Part shown: positions 18,455 to 28,683 of the stretch, piece by piece | How the letters are laid out: the number at the start of each line of letters is the position of its first letter | How positions within the stretch are numbered: the stretch's first letter is position 1 | Source: Rebecca billardiae RCC1528 | Taxonomy: Eukaryota > Protista > Haptophyta | DNA: 64,000 nucleotides | Assembly: GCA_965240325.2 (NCBI GenBank) | Contig: OZ251241.1 | Location: forward strand, 868,001-932,000 | Direction: 5' to 3' | Notes under the pieces: generated by a model | The model's database searches: none | What the model was told of the DNA's origin: nothing | The model's input: the letters and a program-made list of their open reading frames with translations, nothing else | Position numbers and translations under genes: made by a program

Positions 18455-20038
18455 CTAGTACGACGTGCGCTGCCGCTTGCTCGTGCTTTCGCCACGCTGC
18501 TGCTCTGGTGGCTGCGCACCAACGACGCCCATCGCCACGGCCTGCATCAGCATGCACGCCTCGAGCGGATCCTCGCGCATGAACGCACTCCAACGCGCCT
18601 GGCTCACAATCGCCTGCAAGTTGGCCTTCACCACACCGCGCGCTGCCTCGCTGATCCGAGAGCCAGCTCCCGCCGCGCGCGTGTGCCGCAGGATGTCCAG
18701 GCAGTTGTCCGCGTCCAGCACACCCAGCACCGCCTCCTCGCACCGACCCGCCACGAGGCCCAGCAGGTCACCGCCAGCGCGCGCAGAGGCCACCTCGGCT
18801 GCGTCTGGCCCAGAAAGCAGTGCGCCTTGCGCGCTCCCAGCAGCACCCTCGCCGGGCGGCTGCAGCTTGCACGCCAGCCGAAGCAGCTCGAGCACCTCGC
18901 CCGGCTCGGTGGGCAGCTCGGCGCGACCACCCGCGTGTAGCTGGCGCAGCAGCGCCTCGAGCGCCGCCGAGCTGAAGTCCGGGTCGGCGTCCACCTCGCG
19001 CCGGCTGCCCTCGGCCAGGCCGCCGCCCAGCTGCCGCGCAAAGTAGCTCGAGCTGTGAATCAGAAGCGCGCGGCTGCCGCCCAGCTGCGTGCCGTCCGCG
19101 CAGCGGAACACGACGTCGTGCCGCGCGGCTGACGGCTCGCTCACCAACACCGACTGCGAGAGCAGCTGCTCGTGCGACGCGCGCAGCTCGTCGACCTCCT
19201 GCGCCAGCCGGGCGCACTGCGCGCCCGCCGAGCCCAGCGCGCGCTCACAGCACGCGTCGTCACGCACGAGCTTCTTCGCAGCCTGCATGCATGGGTTCCC
19301 GCTGTCTTGGTGCGCACGACGCAGCAGCGCGCCCACAGCCTGCTCGTTGCTCGCCATCGCCGCACGGCCGGCGGCCGAGCTGGTGAGGGCAATGATCGCA
19401 CGCTGTGCCCACGTTTGAGTGTTGCTGTCGGCTGAGCACACCGCTGAAGCGAGCGGAGGGATGGCGCCAGCCTCGACGATTGGCGCGCAGAGCGAGTCTG
19501 ACCTGGCGAGGTTGCGGAGAGCACCCATTGCATTGCACAGAGCCTCCGCATCGGTGCTGGACTTGAGCAGCGCGACGAGCGGTGCGATCGCACCAGCGTC
19601 GGCGATCGATGCGCGGAGCGGGGGATGGCGAGTGAGATTGGCGAGAGCGCCCGTCGCTTCCTTGTGCGACCCTTCAGCATCGGTCGTCTGCAGCATGGCC
19701 ACGAGGGGCTGCACGGCGCCAGCCTGTGACACGCAGCCAGGGAGATTGTACGCAATCATCGTAAGAGCTGCCGCCGCAGCTGCCCGAACGCTTGCTTCGC
19801 GTGATCCTCCCAGCATGCGCACGAGGGTTGCGACCGAGCCGCCTCGCTCGATTGCATCGGGCTCTTCGAGCTTGCGGCCCATCCACGGAACGCAAAACGG
19901 CGTGAGGGCGCTCACGATGGCCTCGTCATCACGTGGCGTCGCCTCGAGCGCGCGCACGAGGTCAGAGAGCGTGGTGGGGCCGATGACCGCCGAGGCGAGT
20001 GCCCCAGCGCGAGCCACGGCCTCCTGGACAAATCCCAT
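18455..20038 (-). CDS. ARM-repeat + BTB/POZ-BACK protein, copy 1 (527 aa; 1 core 42-aa repeat)
   Basis: ATG (MGFVQEAV) at 20038. ARM consensus IADAGAIAPLVALLKS...AMGALRNLA. BTB motif HDVVFRCADG...SRALLIHSSSYF...LEALLRQLH. BACK/3-box-like RCEEAV...DNCLDILRH. C-terminal basic motif SKRQRT. Confidence 0.88.
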   Translation of the reverse strand: MGFVQEAVARAGALASAVIGPTTLSDLVRALEATPRDDEAIVSALTPFCVPWMGRKLEEPDAIERGGSVATLVRMLGGSREASVRAAAAAALTMIAYNLPGCVSQAGAVQPLVAMLQTTDAEGSHKEATGALANLTRHPPLRASIADAGAIAPLVALLKSSTDAEALCNAMGALRNLARSDSLCAPIVEAGAIPPLASAVCSADSNTQTWAQRAIIALTSSAAGRAAMASNEQAVGALLRRAHQDSGNPCMQAAKKLVRDDACCERALGSAGAQCARLAQEVDELRASHEQLLSQSVLVSEPSAARHDVVFRCADGTQLGGSRALLIHSSSYFARQLGGGLAEGSRREVDADPDFSSAALEALLRQLHAGGRAELPTEPGEVLELLRLACKLQPPGEGAAGSAQGALLSGPDAAEVASARAGGDLLGLVAGRCEEAVLGVLDADNCLDILRHTRAAGAGSRISEAARGVVKANLQAIVSQARWSAFMREDPLEACMLMQAVAMGVVGAQPPEQQRGESTSKRQRTSY

Positions 20039-20815
20039 GCGGCCGTCGCTGGGCAGCCGCTCGTCGCCGCTCGATCGACAAGCGCTCGATCGACGACAAG
20101 CGTGAGCGCCGCAGCCAACCGTCGTCTTCACCGGAGCCCTCCCCGGCCCGGACTCTGGGCGAACTCGGAGAACGGTCACTCCACGGCCGGAGAAGCAGCG
20201 CGATGGCGGGTTGGAGTTCGAGGACGGCAGCCCGTCTCTCTGACCCGATGCATGGCGAAGCCTTCGCCGCCCGGCCCTTGCGCTGGCAGTAAGCCGCTAT
20301 CTAGTTAGTGAGTAGCTGATGCAGCCACCGGGACCGCGCGCAGGTGGTCAGTGCCCGTGCCGTATCAGGTCCGAACCAGCTGCAGGCCGAACGGTCGAAG
20401 CACTGGGTCAAGAACTGACGACGTTCACAGCGGGAGTGTGGCGGCAGTGAGCACCAAGCTACTACTACGTGAACAACTTTCTCCAGGATATGCCTCGTGA
20501 TGGCGGAGCACTCTCGACTCTGCGTCAGGTGTACTGTCACCACGCCCAGGGCCTGGCACCGCCCGTTCTGATCATCACCCTTCGTCCTCGATAGTCGTCG
20601 ATCTGCACTTAGTCGATCGTTCGACGTCTTCGACGACGCCTCAGTCATCGTCCTTGAAACGTGTTACGCAACAATTATTGTCGTCGCATCGAAAGCCTCA
20701 TCATGCGACGAGATGAATCCTCAAGCCAGTACGAGTGCGCACCTGTAATCGGAATCGTCGGACATCGATCTAACTGATGAGGCTCTGCGCCGCGGCCAGT
20801 GACGCTGCGCTCTGA

Positions 20816-23800
20816 TCACGACGTGCGCTGCCGCTTGCTCGTGCTTTCGCCACGCTGCTGCTCTGGCGGCTGCGCACCAACGACGTCCATCGCCACGGCC
20901 TGCATCAGCATGCACGCCCCGAGCGGATCCTCGCGCATGAACGCACTCCAACGCGCCTGGCTCACAATCGCCTGCAAGTTGGCCTTCACCACACCGCGCG
21001 CTGCCTCGCTTATCTGAGAGCCAGCTCCCGCCGCGCGCGCGTGCCGCAGGATGTCCAGGCAGTTGTCCGCGTCCAGCACGCCCAGCACCGCCTCCTCGCA
21101 CCGACCCGCCACGAGGCCCAGCAGGTCACCGCCAGCGCGCGCAGAGGCCGCCTCGGCTGCGTCTGGCCCAGAAAGCAGTGCGCCTTGCGCGCTCCCAGCA
21201 GCACCCTTGCCGGGCGGCTGCAGCTTGCACGCCAGCCGAAGCAGCTCGAGCACCTCGCCCGGCTCGGTGGGCAGCTCGGCGCGACCACCCGCGTGTAGCT
21301 GGCGCAGCAGCGCCTCGAGCGCCGCCGAGCTGAAGTCCGGGTCGGCGTCCACCTCGCGCCGGCTGCCCTCGGCCAGGCCGCCGCCCAGCTGCCGCGCAAA
21401 GTAGCTCGAGCTGTGGATCAGAAGCGCGCGGCTGCCGCCCAGCTGCGTGCCGTCCGCACAGCGGAACACGACGTCGTGCCGCGCGGCTGACGGCTCGCTC
21501 ACCAACACCGACTGCGAGAGCAGCTGCTCGTGCGACGCGCGCAGCTCGTCGACCTCCTGCGCCAGCCGGGCGCACTGCGCGCCCGCCGAGCCCAGCGCGC
21601 GCTCACAGCACGCGTCGTCACGCACGAGCTTCTTCGCAGCCTGCATGCAGGCGTCCCCGCTGTCTTGGTGCGCACGACGCAGCAGCGCGCCCACAGCCTG
21701 CTCGTTGCTCGCCATCGCCGCACGGCCGGCGGCCGAGCTGGTGAGGGCATTGATCGCACGCTGTGCCCACGTTTGAGTGTTGCTGTCGGCTGAGTACGCC
21801 GCTGACGCGAGCGGAGGGATGGCGCCAGCCTCGACGATCGATGCGCAGAGCGAGTCTGACACGGCAAGGTTGGCGAGAGCGAGCGCTGCACTGCCCAGAG
21901 CGTGCGCATCGGTGCTGGACTTGAGCAGCGCGACGAGCGGTGTGATCGCGCCAGCCTCGGCGATCGGTGTGCGGAGCGGGGGATCACAAGCAAGGCTGAA
22001 GAGAGCACCCGCTGCATTGCCCAGAGTGTTCGCATCGGTGCTGGACTTGAGCAGCGCGACGAGCGGCGAGATTGCGCCAGCCTCGGCGATCGGTGCACGA
22101 AGCGAGTGATCGCAAGCAAGGCTCCAGAGAGCACTCGCTGCATTGCCCAGAGTGTTCGCATCGGTGCTGGACTTGAGCAGCGCGACGAGCGGTGTGATCG
22201 CGCCAGCCTCGGCGATCGGTGCGCGGAGCGGGGGATCACAAGCAAGGCTGAAGAGAGCACTCGCTGCATTGCGCAGAGCCCTCGAATCGGTGCTGGACTT
22301 TAGCAGCGCGACGAGCGGTGCGATCGCGCCAGCCTCGGCGATCGGTGCGCGGAGCGGGGGATCACAAGCAAGGCTGAAGACAGCACTCGCTGCATTGCGC
22401 AGAGCCCTCGAATCGGTGCTGGACTTTAGCAGCGCGACGAGCGGTGCGATCGCACCAGCCTCGACGATTGGCGCGCGGAGCGAGTCTGACTGGGCGAGGT
22501 TGGCGAGAGCGAGCGCTGCACTGCCCAGAGCGTGCGCATCGGTGCTGGACTTGAGCAGCGCGACGAGCGGTGTGATCGCGCCAGCCTCGGCGATCGGTGT
22601 GCGGAGCGGGGGATCACAAGCAAAGCTGAAGAGAGCACCCGCTGCCTTGCCCAGAGTGTTCGCATCGGTGCTGGACTTGAGCAGCGCGACGAGCGGCGAG
22701 ATTGCGCCAGCCTCGGCGATCGGTGCACGAAGCGAGTGATCGCAAGCAAGGCTCCAGAGAGCACTCGCTGCATTGCCCAGAGTGTTCGCATCGGTGCTGG
22801 ACTTGAGCAGCGCGACGAGCGGTGTGATCGCGCCAGCCTCGGCGATCGGTGCGCGGAGCGGGGGATCACAAGCAAGGCTGAAGAGAGCACTCGCTGCATT
22901 GCGCAGAGCCCTCGAATCGGTGCTGGACTTTAGCAGCGCGACGAGCGGTGCGATCGCGCCAGCCTCGGCGATCGGTGCGCGGAGCGGGGGATCACAAGCA
23001 AGGCTGAAGAGAGCACTCGCTGCATTGCGCAGAGCCCTCGAATCGGTGCTGGACTTTAGCAGCGCGACGAGCGGTGCGATCGCACCAGCCTCGACGATTG
23101 GCGCGCGGAGCGAGTCTGACTGGGCGAGGTTGGCGAGAGCGAGCGCTGCACTGCCCAGAGCGTGCGCATCGGTGCTGGACTTGAGCAGCGCGACGAGCGG
23201 TGTGATCGCGCCAGCCTCGGCGATCGGTGTGCGGAGCGGGGGATCACAAGCAAAGCTGAAGAGAGCACCCGCTGCCTTGCCCAGAGTGTTCGCATCGGTG
23301 CTGGACTTGAGCAGCGCGACGAGCGGCGAGATTGCGCCAGCCTCGGCGATCGGTGCACGAAGCGAGTGATCGCAAGCAAGGCTCCAGAGAGCACTCGCTG
23401 CATTGCCCAGAGTGTTCGCATCGGTGCTGGACTTGAGCAGCGCGACGAGCGGTGCGATCGCACCAGCCTCGGCGATCGGTGCGCGGAGTGAGTCTGACCT
23501 GGCGAGGTTGCAGAGAGCACCCATTGCATTGCACAGAGCCTCCGCATCGGTGCTGGACTTGAGCAGCGCGACGAGTGGAGGGATGGCGCCCGCCTCGACG
23601 ATTGGCGCGCAGAGCGAGTCTGACCTGGCGAGGTTGCCGAGAGCACCCGCTGCATTGCCCAGAGTGTTCGCATCGGTGCTGGACGTCAGCAGCGCGACGA
23701 GTGGAGGGATGGCGCCAGCTTCGACGATCGGTGCGCAGAGCGAGTCTGACACGGCAAGGTTGGCGAGAGCGAGCGCTGCACTGCCCAGAGCGTGCGCATC

Positions 23801-24412
23801 GGTGCTGGACTTGAGCAGCGCGACGAGCGGTGCGATCGCACCAGCCTCGGCGATCGGTGCGCGGAGTGAGTCTGACCTGGCGAGGTTGCAGAGAGCACCC
23901 ATTGCATTGCACAGAGCCTCCGCATCGGTGCTGGACTTGAGCAGCGCGACGAGCGGTGCGATCGCACCAGCGTCGGCGATCGATGCGCGGAGCGAGTCAA
24001 ACGTGGCAAGGTTGCAGAGAGCAAGAGCTGCCGCCTTGTACAGCCCTTCAGTATCGGTTGTCTGCAGCATGGCCACGAGGGGCTGCACCGCGCCAGCCAG
24101 TGACACGCAGCCAGGTACATGGGCCGCGATCCTCGCAAGAGCTGCCGCCGCAGCTGCCCGAACGCTTGCTTCGCGTGATGCTCCCAGCATGCGCACGAGG
24201 GTTGCGACCGAGCCGCCTCGCTCGATTGCATCGGGCTCTTCGAGCTTGCGGCCCATCCACGGAACGCAAAACGGCGTGAGGGCGCTCACGATGGCCTCGT
24301 CATCACGTGGCGTCGCCTCGAGCGCGCGCACGAGGTCAGAGAGCGTGGCGGGGCCGATGACCGCCGAGGCGAGTGCCCCAGCGCGAGCCACGGCCTCCTG
24401 GACAAATCCCAT
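20816..24412 (-). CDS. ARM-repeat + BTB/POZ-BACK protein, copy 2 (1198 aa; 17 core 42-aa repeats)
   Basis: Same N- and C-terminal parts as copy 1, with 16 additional in-frame 126-bp modules. Uninterrupted ORF. Confidence 0.9.
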   Translation of the reverse strand: MGFVQEAVARAGALASAVIGPATLSDLVRALEATPRDDEAIVSALTPFCVPWMGRKLEEPDAIERGGSVATLVRMLGASREASVRAAAAAALARIAAHVPGCVSLAGAVQPLVAMLQTTDTEGLYKAAALALCNLATFDSLRASIADAGAIAPLVALLKSSTDAEALCNAMGALCNLARSDSLRAPIAEAGAIAPLVALLKSSTDAHALGSAALALANLAVSDSLCAPIVEAGAIPPLVALLTSSTDANTLGNAAGALGNLARSDSLCAPIVEAGAIPPLVALLKSSTDAEALCNAMGALCNLARSDSLRAPIAEAGAIAPLVALLKSSTDANTLGNAASALWSLACDHSLRAPIAEAGAISPLVALLKSSTDANTLGKAAGALFSFACDPPLRTPIAEAGAITPLVALLKSSTDAHALGSAALALANLAQSDSLRAPIVEAGAIAPLVALLKSSTDSRALRNAASALFSLACDPPLRAPIAEAGAIAPLVALLKSSTDSRALRNAASALFSLACDPPLRAPIAEAGAITPLVALLKSSTDANTLGNAASALWSLACDHSLRAPIAEAGAISPLVALLKSSTDANTLGKAAGALFSFACDPPLRTPIAEAGAITPLVALLKSSTDAHALGSAALALANLAQSDSLRAPIVEAGAIAPLVALLKSSTDSRALRNAASAVFSLACDPPLRAPIAEAGAIAPLVALLKSSTDSRALRNAASALFSLACDPPLRAPIAEAGAITPLVALLKSSTDANTLGNAASALWSLACDHSLRAPIAEAGAISPLVALLKSSTDANTLGNAAGALFSLACDPPLRTPIAEAGAITPLVALLKSSTDAHALGSAALALANLAVSDSLCASIVEAGAIPPLASAAYSADSNTQTWAQRAINALTSSAAGRAAMASNEQAVGALLRRAHQDSGDACMQAAKKLVRDDACCERALGSAGAQCARLAQEVDELRASHEQLLSQSVLVSEPSAARHDVVFRCADGTQLGGSRALLIHSSSYFARQLGGGLAEGSRREVDADPDFSSAALEALLRQLHAGGRAELPTEPGEVLELLRLACKLQPPGKGAAGSAQGALLSGPDAAEAASARAGGDLLGLVAGRCEEAVLGVLDADNCLDILRHARAAGAGSQISEAARGVVKANLQAIVSQARWSAFMREDPLGACMLMQAVAMDVVGAQPPEQQRGESTSKRQRTS
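21848..23989 (-). repeat. Coding tandem array of 17 x 126-bp ARM modules, with 630-bp (5-module) higher-order repeat over 21848-23485
   Basis: The near-invariant anchor ATCGGTGCTGGACTT(G/T)AGCAGCGCGACGAG recurs every 126 nt. Modules 5-9, 10-14 and 15-17 repeat in the same order. Confidence 0.95.
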
Positions 24413-25197
24413 GCGGCCGTCGCTGGGCAGCCGCTCGTCGCCGCTCGATCGACAAGCGCTCGATCGACGACAAGCGTGAGCGCCGCAGCCAACCGTCGTC
24501 TTCACCGGAGCCCTCCCCGGCCCGGACTCTGGGCGAACTCGGAGAACGGTCACTCCACGGGCGACCGGAGAAGCAGCGCGATGGCGGGTTGGAGTTCGAG
24601 GACGGCAGCCCGTCTCTCTGACCCGATGCATGGCGAAGCCTTCGCCGCCCGGCCCTTGCGCTGGCAGTAAGCCGCTATCCAGCTAGTGAGTAGCTGATGC
24701 AGCCACCGGGACCGCGCGCAGGTGGTCAGTGCCCGTGCCGTATCAGGTCCGAACCAGCTGCAGGCCGAACGGTCGAAGCACTGGGTCAAGAACTGACGAC
24801 GTTCACAGCGGGAGTGTGGCGGCAGTGGGCACCAAGCTACTACTACGTGAACAACTTTCTCCAGGATATGCCTCGTGATGGCGGAGCACTCTCGACTCTG
24901 CGTCAGGTGTACTGTCACCACGCCCAGGGCCTGGCACCGCCCGTTCTGATCATCACCCTTCGTCCTCGATGTCTCGATAGTCGTCTGCACTTAGTCGATC
25001 GTTCGACGTCTTCGACGACGCCTCAGTCATCGTCCTTGAAACGTGTTACGCAACAATTATTGTCGTCGCATCGAAAGCCTCGTCATGCGACGAGATGAAT
25101 CCTCAAGCCAGTACGAGTGCGCACCTGTAATCGGAATCGTCGGACATCGATCTGACTGATGAGGCTCTGCGCCGCGGCCAGTGACGCTGCGCTCTGA

Positions 25198-27030
25198 TCA
25201 CGACGTGCGCTGCCGCTTGCTCGTGCTTTCGCCACGCTGCTGCTCTGGCGGCTGCGCACCAACGACGTCCATCGCCACGGCCTGCATCAGCATGCACGCC
25301 TCGAGCGGATCCTCGCGCATGAACGCACTCCAACGCGCCTGGCTCACAATCGCCTGCAAGTTGGCCTTCACCACACCGCGCGCTGCCTCGCTGATCCGAG
25401 AGCCAGCTCCCGCCGCGCGCGCGTGCCGCAGGATGTCCAGGCAGTTGTCCGCGTCCAGCACGCCCAGCACCGCCTCCTCGCACCGACCCCCCACGAGGCC
25501 CAGCAGGTCACCGCCAGCGCGCGCAGAGGCCACCTCGGCTGCGTCTGGCCCAGAAAGCAGTGCGCCTTGCGCGCTCCCAGCAGCACCCTCGCCGGGCGGC
25601 TGCAGCTTGCACGCCAGCCGAAGCAGCTCGAGCACCTCGCCCGGCTCGGTGGGCAGCTCGGCGCGACCACCCGCGTGCAGCTGGCGCAGCAGCGCCTCGA
25701 GCGCCGCCGAGCTGAAGTCCGGGTCGGCGTCCACCTCGCGCCGGCTGCCCTCGGCCAGGCCGCCGCCCAGCTGCCGCGCAAAGTAGCTCGAGCCGTGGAT
25801 CAGGAGCGCGCGGCTGCCGCCCAGCTGCGTGCCGTCCGCGCAGCGGAACACGACGTCGTGCCGCGCGGCTGACGGCTCGCTCACCAACACCGACTGCGAG
25901 AGCAGCTGCTCGTGCGACGCGCGCAGCTCGTCGACCTCCTGCGCCAGCCGGGCGCACTGCGCGCCCGCCGAGCCCAGCGCGCGCTCACAGCACGCGTCGT
26001 CACGCACGAGCTTCTTCGCAGCCTTCATGCAGGCGTCCCCGCTGTCGTGGTGGGCACGACGCAGCAGCGCGCCCACAGCCTGCTCGTTGCTCGCCATCGC
26101 CGCACGGCCGGCGGCCGAGCTGGTGAGGGCATTGATCGCACTCTGTGCCCACGTTTGAGTGTTGCTGTCGGCTGAGTACGCCGCTGACGCGAGCGGAGGG
26201 ATGGCGCCAGCCTCGACGATCGATGCGCAGAGCGAGTCTGACACGGCAAGGCGGGCGAGAGCGAGCGCTGCACTGCCCAGAGCATGCGCATCGGTGCTGG
26301 ACTTGAGCAGCGCGACGAGTGGAGGGATGGCGCCAGCTTCGACGATCGGTGCGCAGAGCGAGTCTGACACGGCAAGGTTGGCGAGAGCGAGCGCTGCACT
26401 GCCCAGAGCGTGCGCATCGGTGCTGGACTTGAGCAGCGCGACGAGCGGCGAGATCGCGCCAGCCTCGGCGATCGGTGCACGGAGCAAGCGATCAAAAGTA
26501 AGGTCGCAGAGAGCACCCGCTGCATCGCACAGAGCCTCCGCATCGGTGCTGGACTTGAGCAGCGCGACGAGCGGTGAGATCGCACCAGCGTCGGCGATCG
26601 ATGCGCGGAGCGAGGGATGGCGAGTGAGATTGGCGAGAGCGCCCGTCGCTTCCTTGTGCGACCCTTCAGCATCGGTCGTCTGCAGCATGGCCACGAGGGG
26701 CTGCACGGCGTCAGCCTGTGACACGCAGCCAGGGATATGGGACGCAATCATCGTAAGAGCTGCTGCCGCAGCTGCCCGAACGCTTGCTTCGTGTGATGCT
26801 CCCAGCATGCGCACGAGGGTTGCGACCGAGCCGCCTCGCTCGATTGCATCGGGCCCTTCGATTGTGCTGCCCGGCATAACCCAGAACGGGGTGAGGGCGC
26901 TCACGACGGCCTCGTCATCACGTGGCGTCGTCTCGAGCGCGCGCACGAGGTCAGAGAGCGTGGCGGGGCCGATGACCGCCGAGGCGAGTGACCCAGCGCG
27001 AACCACGGCCTTCTGGACACACGTCATCAT
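25198..27030 (-). CDS. ARM-repeat + BTB/POZ-BACK protein, copy 3 (~610 aa; 3 core repeats at 26230-26607)
   Basis: ATG ATG (MMTCVQKAV) at 27030 aligns with the starts of copies 1 and 2. Same BTB/BACK C-terminus. Confidence 0.88.
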   Translation of the reverse strand: MMTCVQKAVVRAGSLASAVIGPATLSDLVRALETTPRDDEAVVSALTPFWVMPGSTIEGPDAIERGGSVATLVRMLGASHEASVRAAAAAALTMIASHIPGCVSQADAVQPLVAMLQTTDAEGSHKEATGALANLTRHPSLRASIADAGAISPLVALLKSSTDAEALCDAAGALCDLTFDRLLRAPIAEAGAISPLVALLKSSTDAHALGSAALALANLAVSDSLCAPIVEAGAIPPLVALLKSSTDAHALGSAALALARLAVSDSLCASIVEAGAIPPLASAAYSADSNTQTWAQSAINALTSSAAGRAAMASNEQAVGALLRRAHHDSGDACMKAAKKLVRDDACCERALGSAGAQCARLAQEVDELRASHEQLLSQSVLVSEPSAARHDVVFRCADGTQLGGSRALLIHGSSYFARQLGGGLAEGSRREVDADPDFSSAALEALLRQLHAGGRAELPTEPGEVLELLRLACKLQPPGEGAAGSAQGALLSGPDAAEVASARAGGDLLGLVGGRCEEAVLGVLDADNCLDILRHARAAGAGSRISEAARGVVKANLQAIVSQARWSAFMREDPLEACMLMQAVAMDVVGAQPPEQQRGESTSKRQRTS

Positions 27031-27084
27031 GTGGCCGCCGCAGTGATCAGCCCTCGTCGCCGCTCGAACGCTGCAAGCGCTCGA

Positions 27085-28683
27085 CCCGGAACGCCGCAGA
27101 AAAGGGCGGGAACCGGACATGTCGTTGGTCGGCCGGCCGGCGATGGCGGTACGCGCTGCCCCGCGTGTTCGATCGGCTTCTTCAACATCCGCGGCGCACG
27201 TCTGCGCCGATGGGCCCGGCGCTCACGCGCGAGCGCGAGGCACCGAGTGCATCGACGCTTGCCGGGAACTCTGGCAAGAGCCCGAGCAGTGGCCACGCGA
27301 TCCCTCACGACGACGGCTCGCATGATGGCTCAGAGGAGGAGCCGAACCTCGGCTACCAGCCATATCCGCTGCAGGTCGAGGTCGGGGTCGGAGGGCGTGG
27401 ACGGCGAGAACGGCGCCTCGCAGGACGTCATCGCCCGCCAGGTATGGCAGTGTGGGGAATGCGACGACAGGCAGGGCCCTGGCGTGGGCATGTACGCGCA
27501 GCTGGTGCAACGCGGAGCGCAACCAGGGCGGCAGAGGCCTTGGGCTGCACAGCTGCCCCCAGCTGTCGTTCGGCTTCGAGCTGCGCAACCGCGGGCTTAA
27601 TGCGGCAGCAGGGGCGCTGCCGCTGTAGCGGCGACTCGAGGGCGCGGTGCCCGGGTTCGTGCCGAAGAAGGGCGGACGCAAGCGGTCACAGATCAGCGTG
27701 CAGCCCTTCCGGCACGCGGTGGAGACAGTACGCGCACCTGCTGCGCGGGTGGCCGCACGAGGTTGACGCGGCACCGGCCGCGCGGGTCTCCGGGTACAAG
27801 GGGCTGCACACACGAGCGGCCGCGGCCCGGGCAACACGAGGCGCGGGTGCGTCGGATGCGGCGCGCGCGTCTGCAAGCGCTTCGAGCCATTCTGGTCACA
27901 CGCGCGGCAGCACCGCATGCCCCAGCCGCAGCTGCCGCCGCCGTCGGAGGAGCCTATCGTGACTTGTGGAGTTTAGTCATTCCCGCCAAATCCCGAGCTT
28001 GCACCTGCGAGCGCGCCTGCTGGCCTCGGCGCACGCGCCGAGGGACAGGGCGGCCCGGCCGCGAGCGCGGCAGTAGGCAGCCCACCGCGGGGGGCGAAGC
28101 GCACGCGCCACGCGGAGAGCAACTCGCCACTGCGGCAGCTGTCACTATCGAGCCCGGAGCACCGGCGTAAGCGCCGCCAATCAGAGCCGCCGCTCGTGCT
28201 CAATCGCTTATTGGCAGAGGCGTCAGACGCGTCACCGAGCAAGCGGGCACGACCCGCGCGCCGTCGTGCGTCGCTGCCTGCCGCCTAGCCTCAGAGGCGG
28301 TCAGTATCGGCCGCGCGCGTGGCAAGCGTGGCCAGCGGGGCGTTAGACGCGCGCATAGCCTTCGTCCCGCGTGATGCGGCCTTTGGCTAGCTTTCAGATG
28401 CCCGCCGCCCTGGCAGACGAGCCTCTTCTGCCCACACGGCCAGCTGCTCGCGAGTGGCGCCGCTCGTGCGACGTCGAGCCCGCGGGCTCCTCAGAGGGTA
28501 GCTCGACGGCGAGCCTCGCGCTCGCTCGGCATCGCCATCCTTAGCATGCCCGCCGGTTGGGCCGCCCAGAGCACTCACGTGGCCCGACGGCACGCGCCGT
28601 GTACACCTTAAGAACGCCCATATCTGGCCGTAACCGTCATGTGACGAAACTGCAACTACCATGTAACTCCGCGGCGTTCCGGG
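27085..28683. mobile_element. Putative non-autonomous DNA transposon with CCC...GGG termini
   Basis: CCCGGAACGCCGC (27085-27097) is the reverse complement of GCGGCGTTCCGGG (28671-28683). It starts exactly where homology to the other copies' upstream region breaks. Degenerate Cys-containing coding fragments lie inside. Confidence 0.65.

Follow-up and report, generated by a model that had tools for sequence, protein, structure and literature searches.

Within the window analysed here, a 64,000-nucleotide stretch of the Rebecca billardiae RCC1528 genome (contig OZ251241.1), an intron-free gene encodes a long array of near-identical armadillo (ARM) modules followed by a BTB domain. We consider it probable that the product of this gene, hereafter ARM-BTB, is a fast-diversifying substrate adaptor of the Cullin-3 (Cul3) ubiquitin ligase, in which the ARM array would bind the target, Cul3 would be engaged through the BTB tail, and an exposed face of helix 3 would diversify. 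In a preliminary description of this DNA, the variation among the modules had been taken for a small alphabet of recombined half-modules. Recombination is borne out by our results; the most useful outcome on the alphabet, however, is negative, as it represents a history of duplication and not a code.

Anatomy of the ARM-BTB protein and its family

Translation of the ARM-BTB reading frame (Table 1) probably starts at Met74 (24412), since it is from this residue onwards that the N-termini of the paralogs are conserved. Pfam matches to the full frame comprise Arm (E=8e-126, 17 separate stretches), ARM_ARMC5 (300 bits) and BTB (22 bits); domains other than Arm-type and BTB, such as NOD/NACHT or NB-ARC, were not found in this search, and an NLR architecture was discarded for this protein. 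The tetrapeptide AGAI occurs 18 times at an exact spacing of 42 residues, yielding 17 full modules and a degenerate 18th, and TRF describes the array as 17.4 copies of period 126 with 85% matches. Over all module pairs, mean identity is 77% for amino acids and 85% for nucleotides. The preliminary description had placed the modules at 21848-23989, which are the same 17 x 126 nt in a frame offset by 15 nt, and had counted 21 of them, a figure that is reached only if the degenerate flanking ARM repeats are added.

An AF2 model of the array (pLDDT 87.9) displays regular H1-H2-H3 repeats, with H2 at module positions 5-14, H3 at 18-32 and H1 at 35-43. Regular three-helix repeats are also modelled upstream of module 1, where the module HMM matches residues 179-219 at 38 bits. 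In Foldseek, the model retrieved 4rv1 at a TM of 0.75-0.82, together with consensus ARM designs, complexes of designed armadillo binders (dArmRPs) with peptides, Vac8, importin-alpha and beta-catenin. With a profile match above threshold, the 42-residue period and a predicted three-helix superhelix, the modules can be assigned to the Armadillo repeat family (PF00514).

The BTB match is marginal, but 21 of 24 paralog C-termini share it. In an AF2 model of the C-terminal region, built on an alignment of the 24 paralogs, the BTB core is modelled with low confidence, residues 108-164 of the model having pLDDT<50, and the region behind it is helical (pLDDT 82-89). A profile of the paralog C-termini matches the BTB domain of KLHL22, and its positions 245-304 in alignment A1 align with residues 113-171 of KBTBD2 (E=1.3e-4). 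The KRQR motif close to the C-terminus is a candidate nuclear localisation signal.

ARM-BTB belongs to a family of dozens of tandem paralogs with 2-20 modules each, in a very GC-rich genome of 72 Mb (41 Mb-sized contigs). A word-based protein search with a whole 640-residue paralog returned only generic ARM matches of 33-39% identity, the same search with the C-terminal half returned zero relatives, and a scan of JGI metagenome contigs found none of the family. By these word-based and JGI contig searches, the family appears to be without detectable relatives outside its own genome.

Table 1. Features of the ARM-BTB gene and neighbouring paralogs; positions refer to the window.
Feature	Position	Strand	Basis
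ARM-BTB gene, 1271 aa	20816..24631	(-)	Longest ORF, stop included; Pfam
Degenerate N-terminal ARM repeats capping the array, ~aa 133-219	23975..24235	(-)	AF2 three-helix repeats; module HMM
17 in-register 42-aa (126-nt) ARM modules, aa 220-933	21833..23974	(-)	42-aa spacing; AF2
Higher-order repeat, 630-nt five-module block x2.5	21869..23452	(-)	Offset-630 comparison
Module 3, mosaic	23597..23722	(-)	Informative sites; runs test P=9e-4
Module 4, mosaic	23471..23596	(-)	Runs test P=1.7e-4
Module 17, predicted junction of block copy and terminal module	21833..21958	(-)	Informative sites; runs test P=0.07
Degenerate 18th ARM repeat (EAGAIPPLASAAYS...)	21707..21832	(-)	C-terminal cap conserved in paralogs
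BTB/POZ domain, aa 1052-1138	21218..21478	(-)	Pfam BTB 22-24.9 bits, cut-off 20.5
Helical region after BTB, resembling the 3-box/BACK start of KBTBD2	20927..21115 (approximate)	(-)	Profile match; AF2
C-terminal KRQR motif	20825..20836	(-)	K, R and R invariant in 24/24 paralogs
Tandem paralog, 2 ARM module matches + BTB	18455..20179	(-)	Pfam; module HMM
Tandem paralog, 3-4 ARM modules + BTB	25198..27120	(-)	Pfam; module comparison

Block duplication and mosaic modules

All helix-3 types of the preliminary description, and both of the hybrids that it listed, are present in the DNA. The types are AEALCNAMGALCNLARS (modules 1 and 4), AHALGSAALALANLA(V/Q)S (with V in modules 2 and 17 and Q in modules 7 and 12), ANTLGNAASALWSLACD (modules 5, 10 and 15), ANTLGKAAGALFSFACD (modules 6 and 11) and SRALRNAASALFSLACD (modules 8, 9 and 14, and with one change module 13). 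Their recurrence had suggested a small alphabet, but it results from a five-module block of 630 nt (types W, F, H-Q, S and S) that is present 2.5 times, from codon 7 of module 5 to codon 30 of module 17. At an offset of 630, only three mismatches are found in 954 nt (99.7% identity), all of them nonsynonymous (codon 28 of module 8, codons 23 and 31 of module 11). This duplication is very recent, and because of it only 13 distinct DNA sequences exist among the 17 modules. At the level of the family an alphabet can be dismissed altogether: the 60 modules of the ARM-BTB subfamily carry 49 different words at the variable face of helix 3, a single one of which is common to more than one gene, and hence there is no sign of a limited set of reused letters or of a code.

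The preliminary description had raised a potential repeat code. A true modular code, in which each module type would denote a defined ligand unit of about two residues and half-module recombination would write strings from a limited alphabet, is improbable. It would fit the near-identical scaffold, the placement of the variation exactly at the homologues of engineered dArmRP pocket residues (PMC11228518), the binding of one dipeptide per repeat by dArmRPs (PMC6838082) and the fact that half-modules do recombine; the type recurrence that had suggested it, however, is accounted for by the block duplication, and the face words give no indication of letters in common use. It is very unlikely, furthermore, that the near-identical 630-nt copies, and with them some of the array's length and of its apparent alphabet, arose by mis-assembly of a shorter array. 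While repeats with 99.7% identity over 954 nt can be mis-counted by assemblers, the Mb-sized contigs suggest long reads, the copies join cleanly in frame and are set apart by three private substitutions, and other paralogs also possess long arrays of 10-20 modules.

Recombination among the modules is detected by the PHI test (p<=0.001) and, at finer resolution, in individual mosaics, upholding the earlier view of them as recombined half-modules. The informative sites of module 3, one of the two hybrids, follow the N-type (module 16) through codon 25 and the A-type (module 1) over codons 29-36, ending in an H-type tail; the module is also one of four half-module combinations in a four-gamete case, in which two haplotypes of H3a and two of H3b occur in all four combinations in the DNA and which involves a gene 120 kb away. 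Module 4 matches module 3 over codons 3-7 and is identical to module 1 over codons 8-42, which places its breakpoint within the anchor core, the anchor being the conserved stretch around AGAI. In the second hybrid, module 17, codons 1-30 equal modules 12 and 7 and codons 31-42 equal module 2 apart from one base, confirming the module-7 start and module-2 end that had been described; with few informative sites, its runs test remains at P=0.07, and these sites identify it as the place where the third block copy joins the ancestral terminal module. An arbitrarily chosen module phase does not account for the hybrids: when all 42 codon shifts were tried, incompatibility was minimal at shifts of 7-11 codons (121 vs 173), yet about 20% of site pairs remained incompatible. 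Module shuffling is found both within the gene and between family members. The paralog at 18455..20179 contains a full module that differs from module 1 by 1 nt in helix 3, and in the paralog at 25198..27120, modules 2 and 17 recur as its H-V and terminal modules.

The anchor had been credited with three properties, which fare differently. Its near-invariance holds for the protein but only partly for the DNA, where 9 of its 51 bases are polymorphic, with only three of the nine not synonymous. Its role as a crossover point is supported insofar as the unit boundary that fits best falls within the invariant core of the anchor, but breaks also occur inside helix 3, in module 3 and in the four-gamete case. 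Preferential homogenisation, finally, is ruled out, as synonymous divergence in the anchor (pS 0.18) equals that in helix 3 (0.16); the constancy of the anchor is therefore due to purifying selection (omega ~0.2). We propose that unequal crossing-over and gene conversion among near-identical 126-nt modules would grow and reshuffle the array, including by exchange with modules of paralogous genes, and that such exchanges may begin in any short tract of identity, be it the anchor core or the invariant middle of helix 3.

The variable face of helix 3 and tests for selection

As had been noted in the preliminary description, variation is focused on helix 3, at seven positions (19, 22, 23, 26, 29, 30 and 33). 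These do not fall at random but follow the periodicity of a helix, with a variability moment that peaks at 105° and is attained in just 11 of 10000 shuffles for the ARM-BTB gene and 4 of 10000 for the other genes. Aligned on the AL.N[IL]A motif, positions 23/26/30 correspond to E30/W33/N37 of dArmRPs, which lie on the surface or in the pocket (PMC4756613, PMC11228518), and the variable positions 22/23/26/30 as a whole align with the pocket or backbone-binding positions 29/30/33/37. At position 30, 10 of the 17 modules have Ser where Asn would be the canonical backbone-binding residue. The variability is thus supported as residing on one face of helix 3, predicted to bind peptide, with the exposure of this face to the groove deduced from the alignment to solved binders and from the helical periodicity.

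In the ARM-BTB gene, the face codons have N=23.5 and S=2.5 and all other codons N=26 and S=27. The N:S ratio at the face consequently exceeds that of the scaffold (Fisher P=0.006; 3e-4 for the family). For 43 modules of 12 further paralogs, an independent set, face omega is 2.6-2.75 (P ~4e-5), a value that is approximate, as are all tree-based counts on recombining 126-nt modules; disjoint nearest pairs yield a face pN/pS of 2.2-3.0. Overall, omega>1 at face codons is not robust, so that the earlier proposal of diversifying ligand-facing positions stands with regard to their alignment with the ligand positions of ARM peptide binders and to the N:S excess over the scaffold, but not with regard to an omega firmly above 1.

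An alternative to adaptive diversification is neutral drift after recent duplication, in which the exposed helix-3 residues of a scaffold or an ordinary adaptor would be unconstrained (omega ~1) and the core constrained. This is conceivable, if rather unlikely. It would be consistent with the ARM-BTB gene alone, where omega>1 at face codons is not significant (P=0.14), with the young block copies, whose five differences in total (4 N, 1 S) are too few for a test of omega>1, and with a homoplasy-free lower bound from a minimum-spanning tree, at which omega is 1.1-1.6 and not significantly above 1. However, both the tree-based and the independent-pair estimates from the other paralogs reach 2.2-3 at a dS that is equal for face and non-face codons, and diversifying families typically look as this one does, with numerous tandem members of 2-20 modules each and face words that are nearly all unique. 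It is hardly credible that a programmed mutator, in place of selection, targeted the helix-3 codons for hypermutation: the changes do cluster sharply in a few codons next to others that are identical in DNA, but synonymous change per site in the 43-module set is equal (3.1 at the face vs 2.9 elsewhere), the hypervariable codons track helical periodicity and not a DNA motif, and no mutator machinery was seen nearby.

A putative Cul3 adaptor and its relation to known systems

The reading that we favour, a Cul3 substrate adaptor under diversification, integrates these observations. The BTB tail would most likely dock on Cul3, for which the genome has a clear homolog that scores 530 bits against human CUL3 and 360 against CUL4A, and the long armadillo solenoid would bind its target, probably an extended peptide, in a groove that has the helix-3 helices as its lining. 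Purifying selection holds constant the loop, H2 and, in H3, the buried face, which together form the scaffold. At the seven solvent-facing positions of helix 3, amino-acid changes accumulate no more slowly than expected under neutrality, as would be consistent with selection for new binding specificities. As the natural variable positions are those randomised in designed armadillo binders, the arrays could serve as a natural pocket library. We see a slim chance that the family goes further and constitutes a recombination-driven recognition repertoire, directing for example foreign or viral proteins to Cullin-3-dependent degradation, with each module reading about two peptide residues. If this were true, half-module exchange between arrays would create new linear specificities; the family would then be a natural counterpart of the modular dArmRP binders and would form an immune-like system, with a degradation adaptor as its foundation. 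More generally, the arrays offer a possible handle on the way in which a protist marks a shifting set of substrates, perhaps parasites or viruses, for degradation.

Fast-evolving recognition proteins, among them LRR receptors and the fungal NLRs with their WD, ANK and TPR repeats, are characterised by arrays of near-identical repeats in which recombination shuffles the units and variation is confined to the binding face. The same evolutionary mode appears to act here on armadillo repeats fused to a ligase-docking BTB domain, a combination for which we found no description in the literature searched. The closest parallel in domain order, an ARM array followed by BTB, is ARMC5, a known CUL3 adaptor for RPB1 and SREBF (PMC9226510, PMC9462479), a likeness that extends to the ARM_ARMC5 match and to the presence of Cullin-3 in the genome. 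Unlike the ARM-BTB family with its dozens of tandem paralogs and near-identical modules, however, ARMC5 is single-copy and has few, diverged ARM repeats, and we do not assign orthology, because the C-terminal half has no relatives detectable by word search and the ARM matches are generic. The dArmRPs, among the best structural matches, share the 42-residue modules, the near-identical scaffold and, at the natural variable positions, the pocket and backbone-binding positions (PMC11228518, PMC6838082, PMC4756613). They differ in that the ARM-BTB array is natural, with Ser, Gly or Leu in place of Trp33 and mostly Ser in place of Asn37; and the small reused specificity set of modular repeat-code binders, be they TALE-, PUF- or PPR-like or of the dArmRP concept, is not seen among its face words.

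According to Thomas 2006 as cited in PMC8120010, MATH-BTB and F-box adaptor families are expanded and adaptively evolving. They resemble the ARM-BTB family as large lineage-specific tandem families with a conserved ligase-docking domain and with variation and positive selection in the substrate-binding domain; in ARM-BTB, by contrast, this domain is an internally repetitive array that diversifies by module duplication and exchange as well. In this latter respect, the family approaches the high-internal-conservation (HIC) WD40, ANK and TPR repeats of fungal NLRs, which are near-identical, variable in number, shuffled within and between members and hypervariable at their binding surface, with signs of positive selection (PMC4986451, PMC1805685). 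The ARM-BTB array is likewise near-identical, variable in repeat number, shuffled and hypervariable at its predicted binding face, and its block copies, 99.7% identical over 318 residues, exceed the internal repeat identity of >85% over at least 100 residues that defines HIC repeats (PMC4986451), although identity averages only 77% when all module pairs are taken. It differs from these systems in its repeat, as armadillo is absent from the HIC types listed in these two papers, in its effector, a BTB adaptor and not a NOD/NLR, and in its host, a GC-rich protist or alga.

The armadillo array and its gene family

The array lies within one uninterrupted minus-strand ORF, the target gene, in which Pfam recognizes armadillo (ARM) repeats in 17 stretches (Arm, E=8e-126), ARM_ARMC5 with 300 bits, and, at the C-terminus, a BTB/POZ domain. 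The string AGAI occurs 18 times in the protein at a spacing of exactly 42 aa, and we count 17 full modules (m1-m17, numbered along the protein) and a degenerate 18th; TRF reports a period of 126, 17.4 copies and 85% matches. The array has a GC3 of 0.70 vs 0.85 for the C-terminal domain (20816-21706), and the A/T-ending codons GAT, GCT, GCA and AAT are fixed in all 17 target modules.

Conservation among paralogs begins at Met74 of the ORF, and the stretch 5' of it encodes the same amino acids as the upstream extension in the neighbouring paralog. For these two reasons Met74 is probably the true start and the annotated-looking N-terminus probably untranslated, while the shared extension indicates that the 5' flank was duplicated along with the gene. 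In the genome, which is very GC-rich and comprises 72 Mb in 41 contigs, there are more than 100 matches to this ARM-BTB family; several tandem clusters lie on the target's own contig, and arrays have 2 to 20 modules.

Coordinates of the target gene and of neighbouring features in the window
Feature	Window position	Strand	Remarks
ARM-BTB ORF (target gene)	20816-24631	minus	1271 aa, contains the whole array
BTB/POZ domain		minus	aa 1052-1138 of the ORF
Probable start, Met74	24412	minus	
ORF stretch 5' of Met74	24413-24631	minus	
Matching extension of neighbouring paralog	20039-20179	minus	
Full modules m1-m17	21833-23974	minus	aa 220-933
Five-module block, 2.5 copies	21869-23452	minus	W, F, H-Q, S and S types; 630-nt higher-order repeat
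Helix directly before BTB	21500-21620	minus	about aa 1006-1044
C-terminal KRQR motif	20825-20836	minus	
Tandem paralog	18455-20179	minus	flanks target; target-like layout, only 2 modules
Tandem paralog	25198-27120	minus	flanks target; target-like layout, only 3-4 modules
20-nt tandem repeat, 2.2 copies	19201-19244, 21559-21602, 25941-25984		equivalent place in 3/3 local paralogs, within low-confidence Ala/Gly-rich linker after BTB core
Single long ORF	31921-52416	minus	6831 aa; DNA 77-82% GC

A fast-evolving face of helix 3

An AF2 model of aa 101-555 (mean pLDDT 87.9) consists of regular three-helix repeats, with H2, H3 and H1 at module positions 5-14, 18-32 and 35-43. Its top Foldseek matches are consensus ARM designs (4rv1; TM 0.75-0.82, 39% identity), together with complexes of designed armadillo repeat proteins (dArmRPs) with peptides, Vac8, importin-alpha and beta-catenin. 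The helix-3 strings of the preliminary description were all found, in the modules its numbering implies. Per-position entropy in helix 3 is strongly periodic, with a variability moment that is maximal at 105° per residue and was reached by 11 of 10000 shuffles for the target gene and by 4 of 10000 for other genes. The variable face comprises positions 19, 22, 23, 26, 29, 30 and 33; the opposite face comprises 21, 24, 28 and 31 and is adjoined by the invariant position 27. When the modules are aligned to solved ARM designs, anchored on the AL.N[IL]A motif, positions 22, 23, 26 and 30 correspond to dArmRP positions 29, 30, 33 and 37. In dArmRPs, Glu30 and Trp33 of the peptide-binding site are exposed at the surface, positions 27, 32, 34 and 38 pack between repeats, and the peptide main chain is bound by conserved concave-side asparagines (PMC4756613); selected pocket residues carry numbers 29, 30 and 33 (PMC11228518), and binding-induced NMR shifts are largest in helix 3 (PMC10684580). 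The proposed focus of variation on ligand-facing positions of helix 3 thus narrows to a single helical face aligned with known binding positions; that this face would line the peptide-binding groove rests on homology and periodicity. At position 30, only 7 of 17 modules have the canonical Asn; the W, F and S types (classes by helix-3 sequence) have Ser.

Pairwise Nei-Gojobori comparison within the target gene gave a pN/pS of 0.16 for the anchor, the conserved module segment EAGAI.PLVALLKSSTD, 1.66 for helix 3 and 1.98 for the seven face codons. Since pS is about equal in anchor (0.18) and helix 3 (0.16), the anchor is not specially homogenised, as had been suggested; it is purifying selection that keeps it constant. 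Its near-invariance holds for the protein, where position 6 is free and positions 1 and 13 show one change each, but is weaker than claimed in DNA (9/51 bases polymorphic, vs 27/51 in helix 3). Tree parsimony counts 23.5 N to 2.5 S changes at the face codons and 26 to 27 elsewhere, a significant contrast (Fisher P=0.006) in the anticipated direction; the face omega of about 2 does not differ significantly from neutrality (P=0.14). In an independent test, the seven positions picked in the target gene were examined in 12 other paralogs (43 unique modules), giving a face omega of 2.6-2.75 (P=3-5e-5) and 0.6 elsewhere. Synonymous change per site was equal in these modules (3.1 for the face vs 2.9 elsewhere), which argues against a mutational hot spot. 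With local pS, face pN/pS was 2.2-3.0 in disjoint nearest-neighbour pairs, and a deliberately conservative, homoplasy-free minimum-spanning-tree count gave only 1.1-1.6. Evolution of the face is at least neutral and 4-5 times as fast as that of the scaffold, and an omega above 1 at its codons is likely, depending on the method.

Block duplication and mosaic modules

A module-by-module mismatch matrix and an offset-630 comparison revealed a higher-order repeat: m5 codon 7 to m12 codon 30 equals the sequence 630 nt downstream except for 3 mismatches in 954 nt, so that a five-module block exists in 2.5 copies. The 17 modules comprise only 13 different DNA sequences and about 8 independent units. 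Every recurring 'letter' could be traced to this block, to an adjacent S-S duplication or to the m1/m4 and m2/m17 pairs. The larger flanking paralog has the target's H-V and terminal modules, suggesting that m1, m2 and m17 are ancestral array ends and the interior an expansion. Among 60 modules from 13 close paralogs we found 49 different seven-residue face words, only one of them common to more than one gene. What had looked like a small alphabet is therefore duplication history within this gene, with no counterpart at family level; a repeat code is not supported, though as a hypothesis of modular binding it keeps a low probability.

Recombination is indicated by the PHI test, significant for the 13 unique modules at every window size (p<=0.001). 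Site incompatibility is greatest between polymorphic anchor sites and everything downstream; it is moderate for the two helix-3 halves (H3a and H3b) against each other and low for H3b against the tail. When the unit is re-phased, starts at codons 8-12 minimise incompatibility, as would fit duplication boundaries within the invariant core of the anchor, but mosaicism remains at every phase. Module m4 is m3-like at codons 3-7 and then identical to m1 (runs test P=1.7e-4); m3 equals m16 at informative sites through codon 25, is m1-like at codons 29-36 and has a different tail (P=9e-4); m8 combines m5-like and m16-like segments (P=0.008); and in m17 the third block copy meets the ancestral terminal module (P=0.07). 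There are two H3a haplotypes, which differ by 5 nt, and two H3b+tail haplotypes, which differ by about 17 nt; each of the four possible pairings exists, three of them in m3, m8 and m16 and one in a gene some 120 kb distant, with the breakpoint in invariant helix-3 codons 23-25. We regard this cross-gene case as the strongest evidence for recombination. Half-module exchange, including the hybrid m3 noted earlier, is thus real, but its breaks fall inside helix 3 as well as in the anchor, the presumed crossover point. The S-type m8 and m9 are separated by no more than 2-3 nt from one module in the gene L013:4880-6985 (+) (contig C24, about 1.009 Mb), about 120 kb off, although the rest of the arrays differ, which points to ectopic exchange between paralogs.

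A putative Cullin-3 adaptor

The BTB match is marginal, yet recurs in 21 of 24 paralogs, and a profile of the C-terminal halves matches the KLHL22 BTB and the KBTBD2 BTB/BACK junction; in the AF2 model of the C-terminal part, the BTB core is poorly predicted. The genome encodes a clear candidate for a Cullin-3 orthologue (L029:832-3447 (-); contig C29, about 675.9-678.5 kb) that scores 530 bits to human CUL3, 360 to CUL4A and 288 to CUL1. A second cullin, on contig C15, is CUL4-like and seemingly split over two frames. ARMC5 is a known ARM and BTB protein and a CUL3 adaptor (PMC9226510, PMC9462479). Because of the recurrent BTB match, the profile matches, the genomic Cullin-3 and this precedent, we infer that the target protein is probably a Cul3 substrate adaptor, in which the ARM array would act as an expandable, fast-diversifying binding arm. 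The long helix modelled just before BTB (about 39 residues, pLDDT 83-90) may form a coiled coil or serve in dimerisation. All 24 aligned paralogs end in ...SKRQR(T/V)(S/Q), with K, R and R invariant, and the KRQR motif is a candidate nuclear localisation signal.

Neither the protein collection nor metagenome contigs yielded relatives of the C-terminal half, and we found no account of ARM plus BTB with such repeat evolution in the literature searched. The evolutionary mode of the arrays matches that of the 'high internal conservation' WD, ANK and TPR repeats of fungal NLRs (PMC4986451, PMC1805685) and that of the MATH-BTB and F-box adaptor families, which evolve adaptively (Thomas 2006, cited in PMC8120010). 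The ARM-BTB family differs from these in repeat type (armadillo), effector (BTB) and host.
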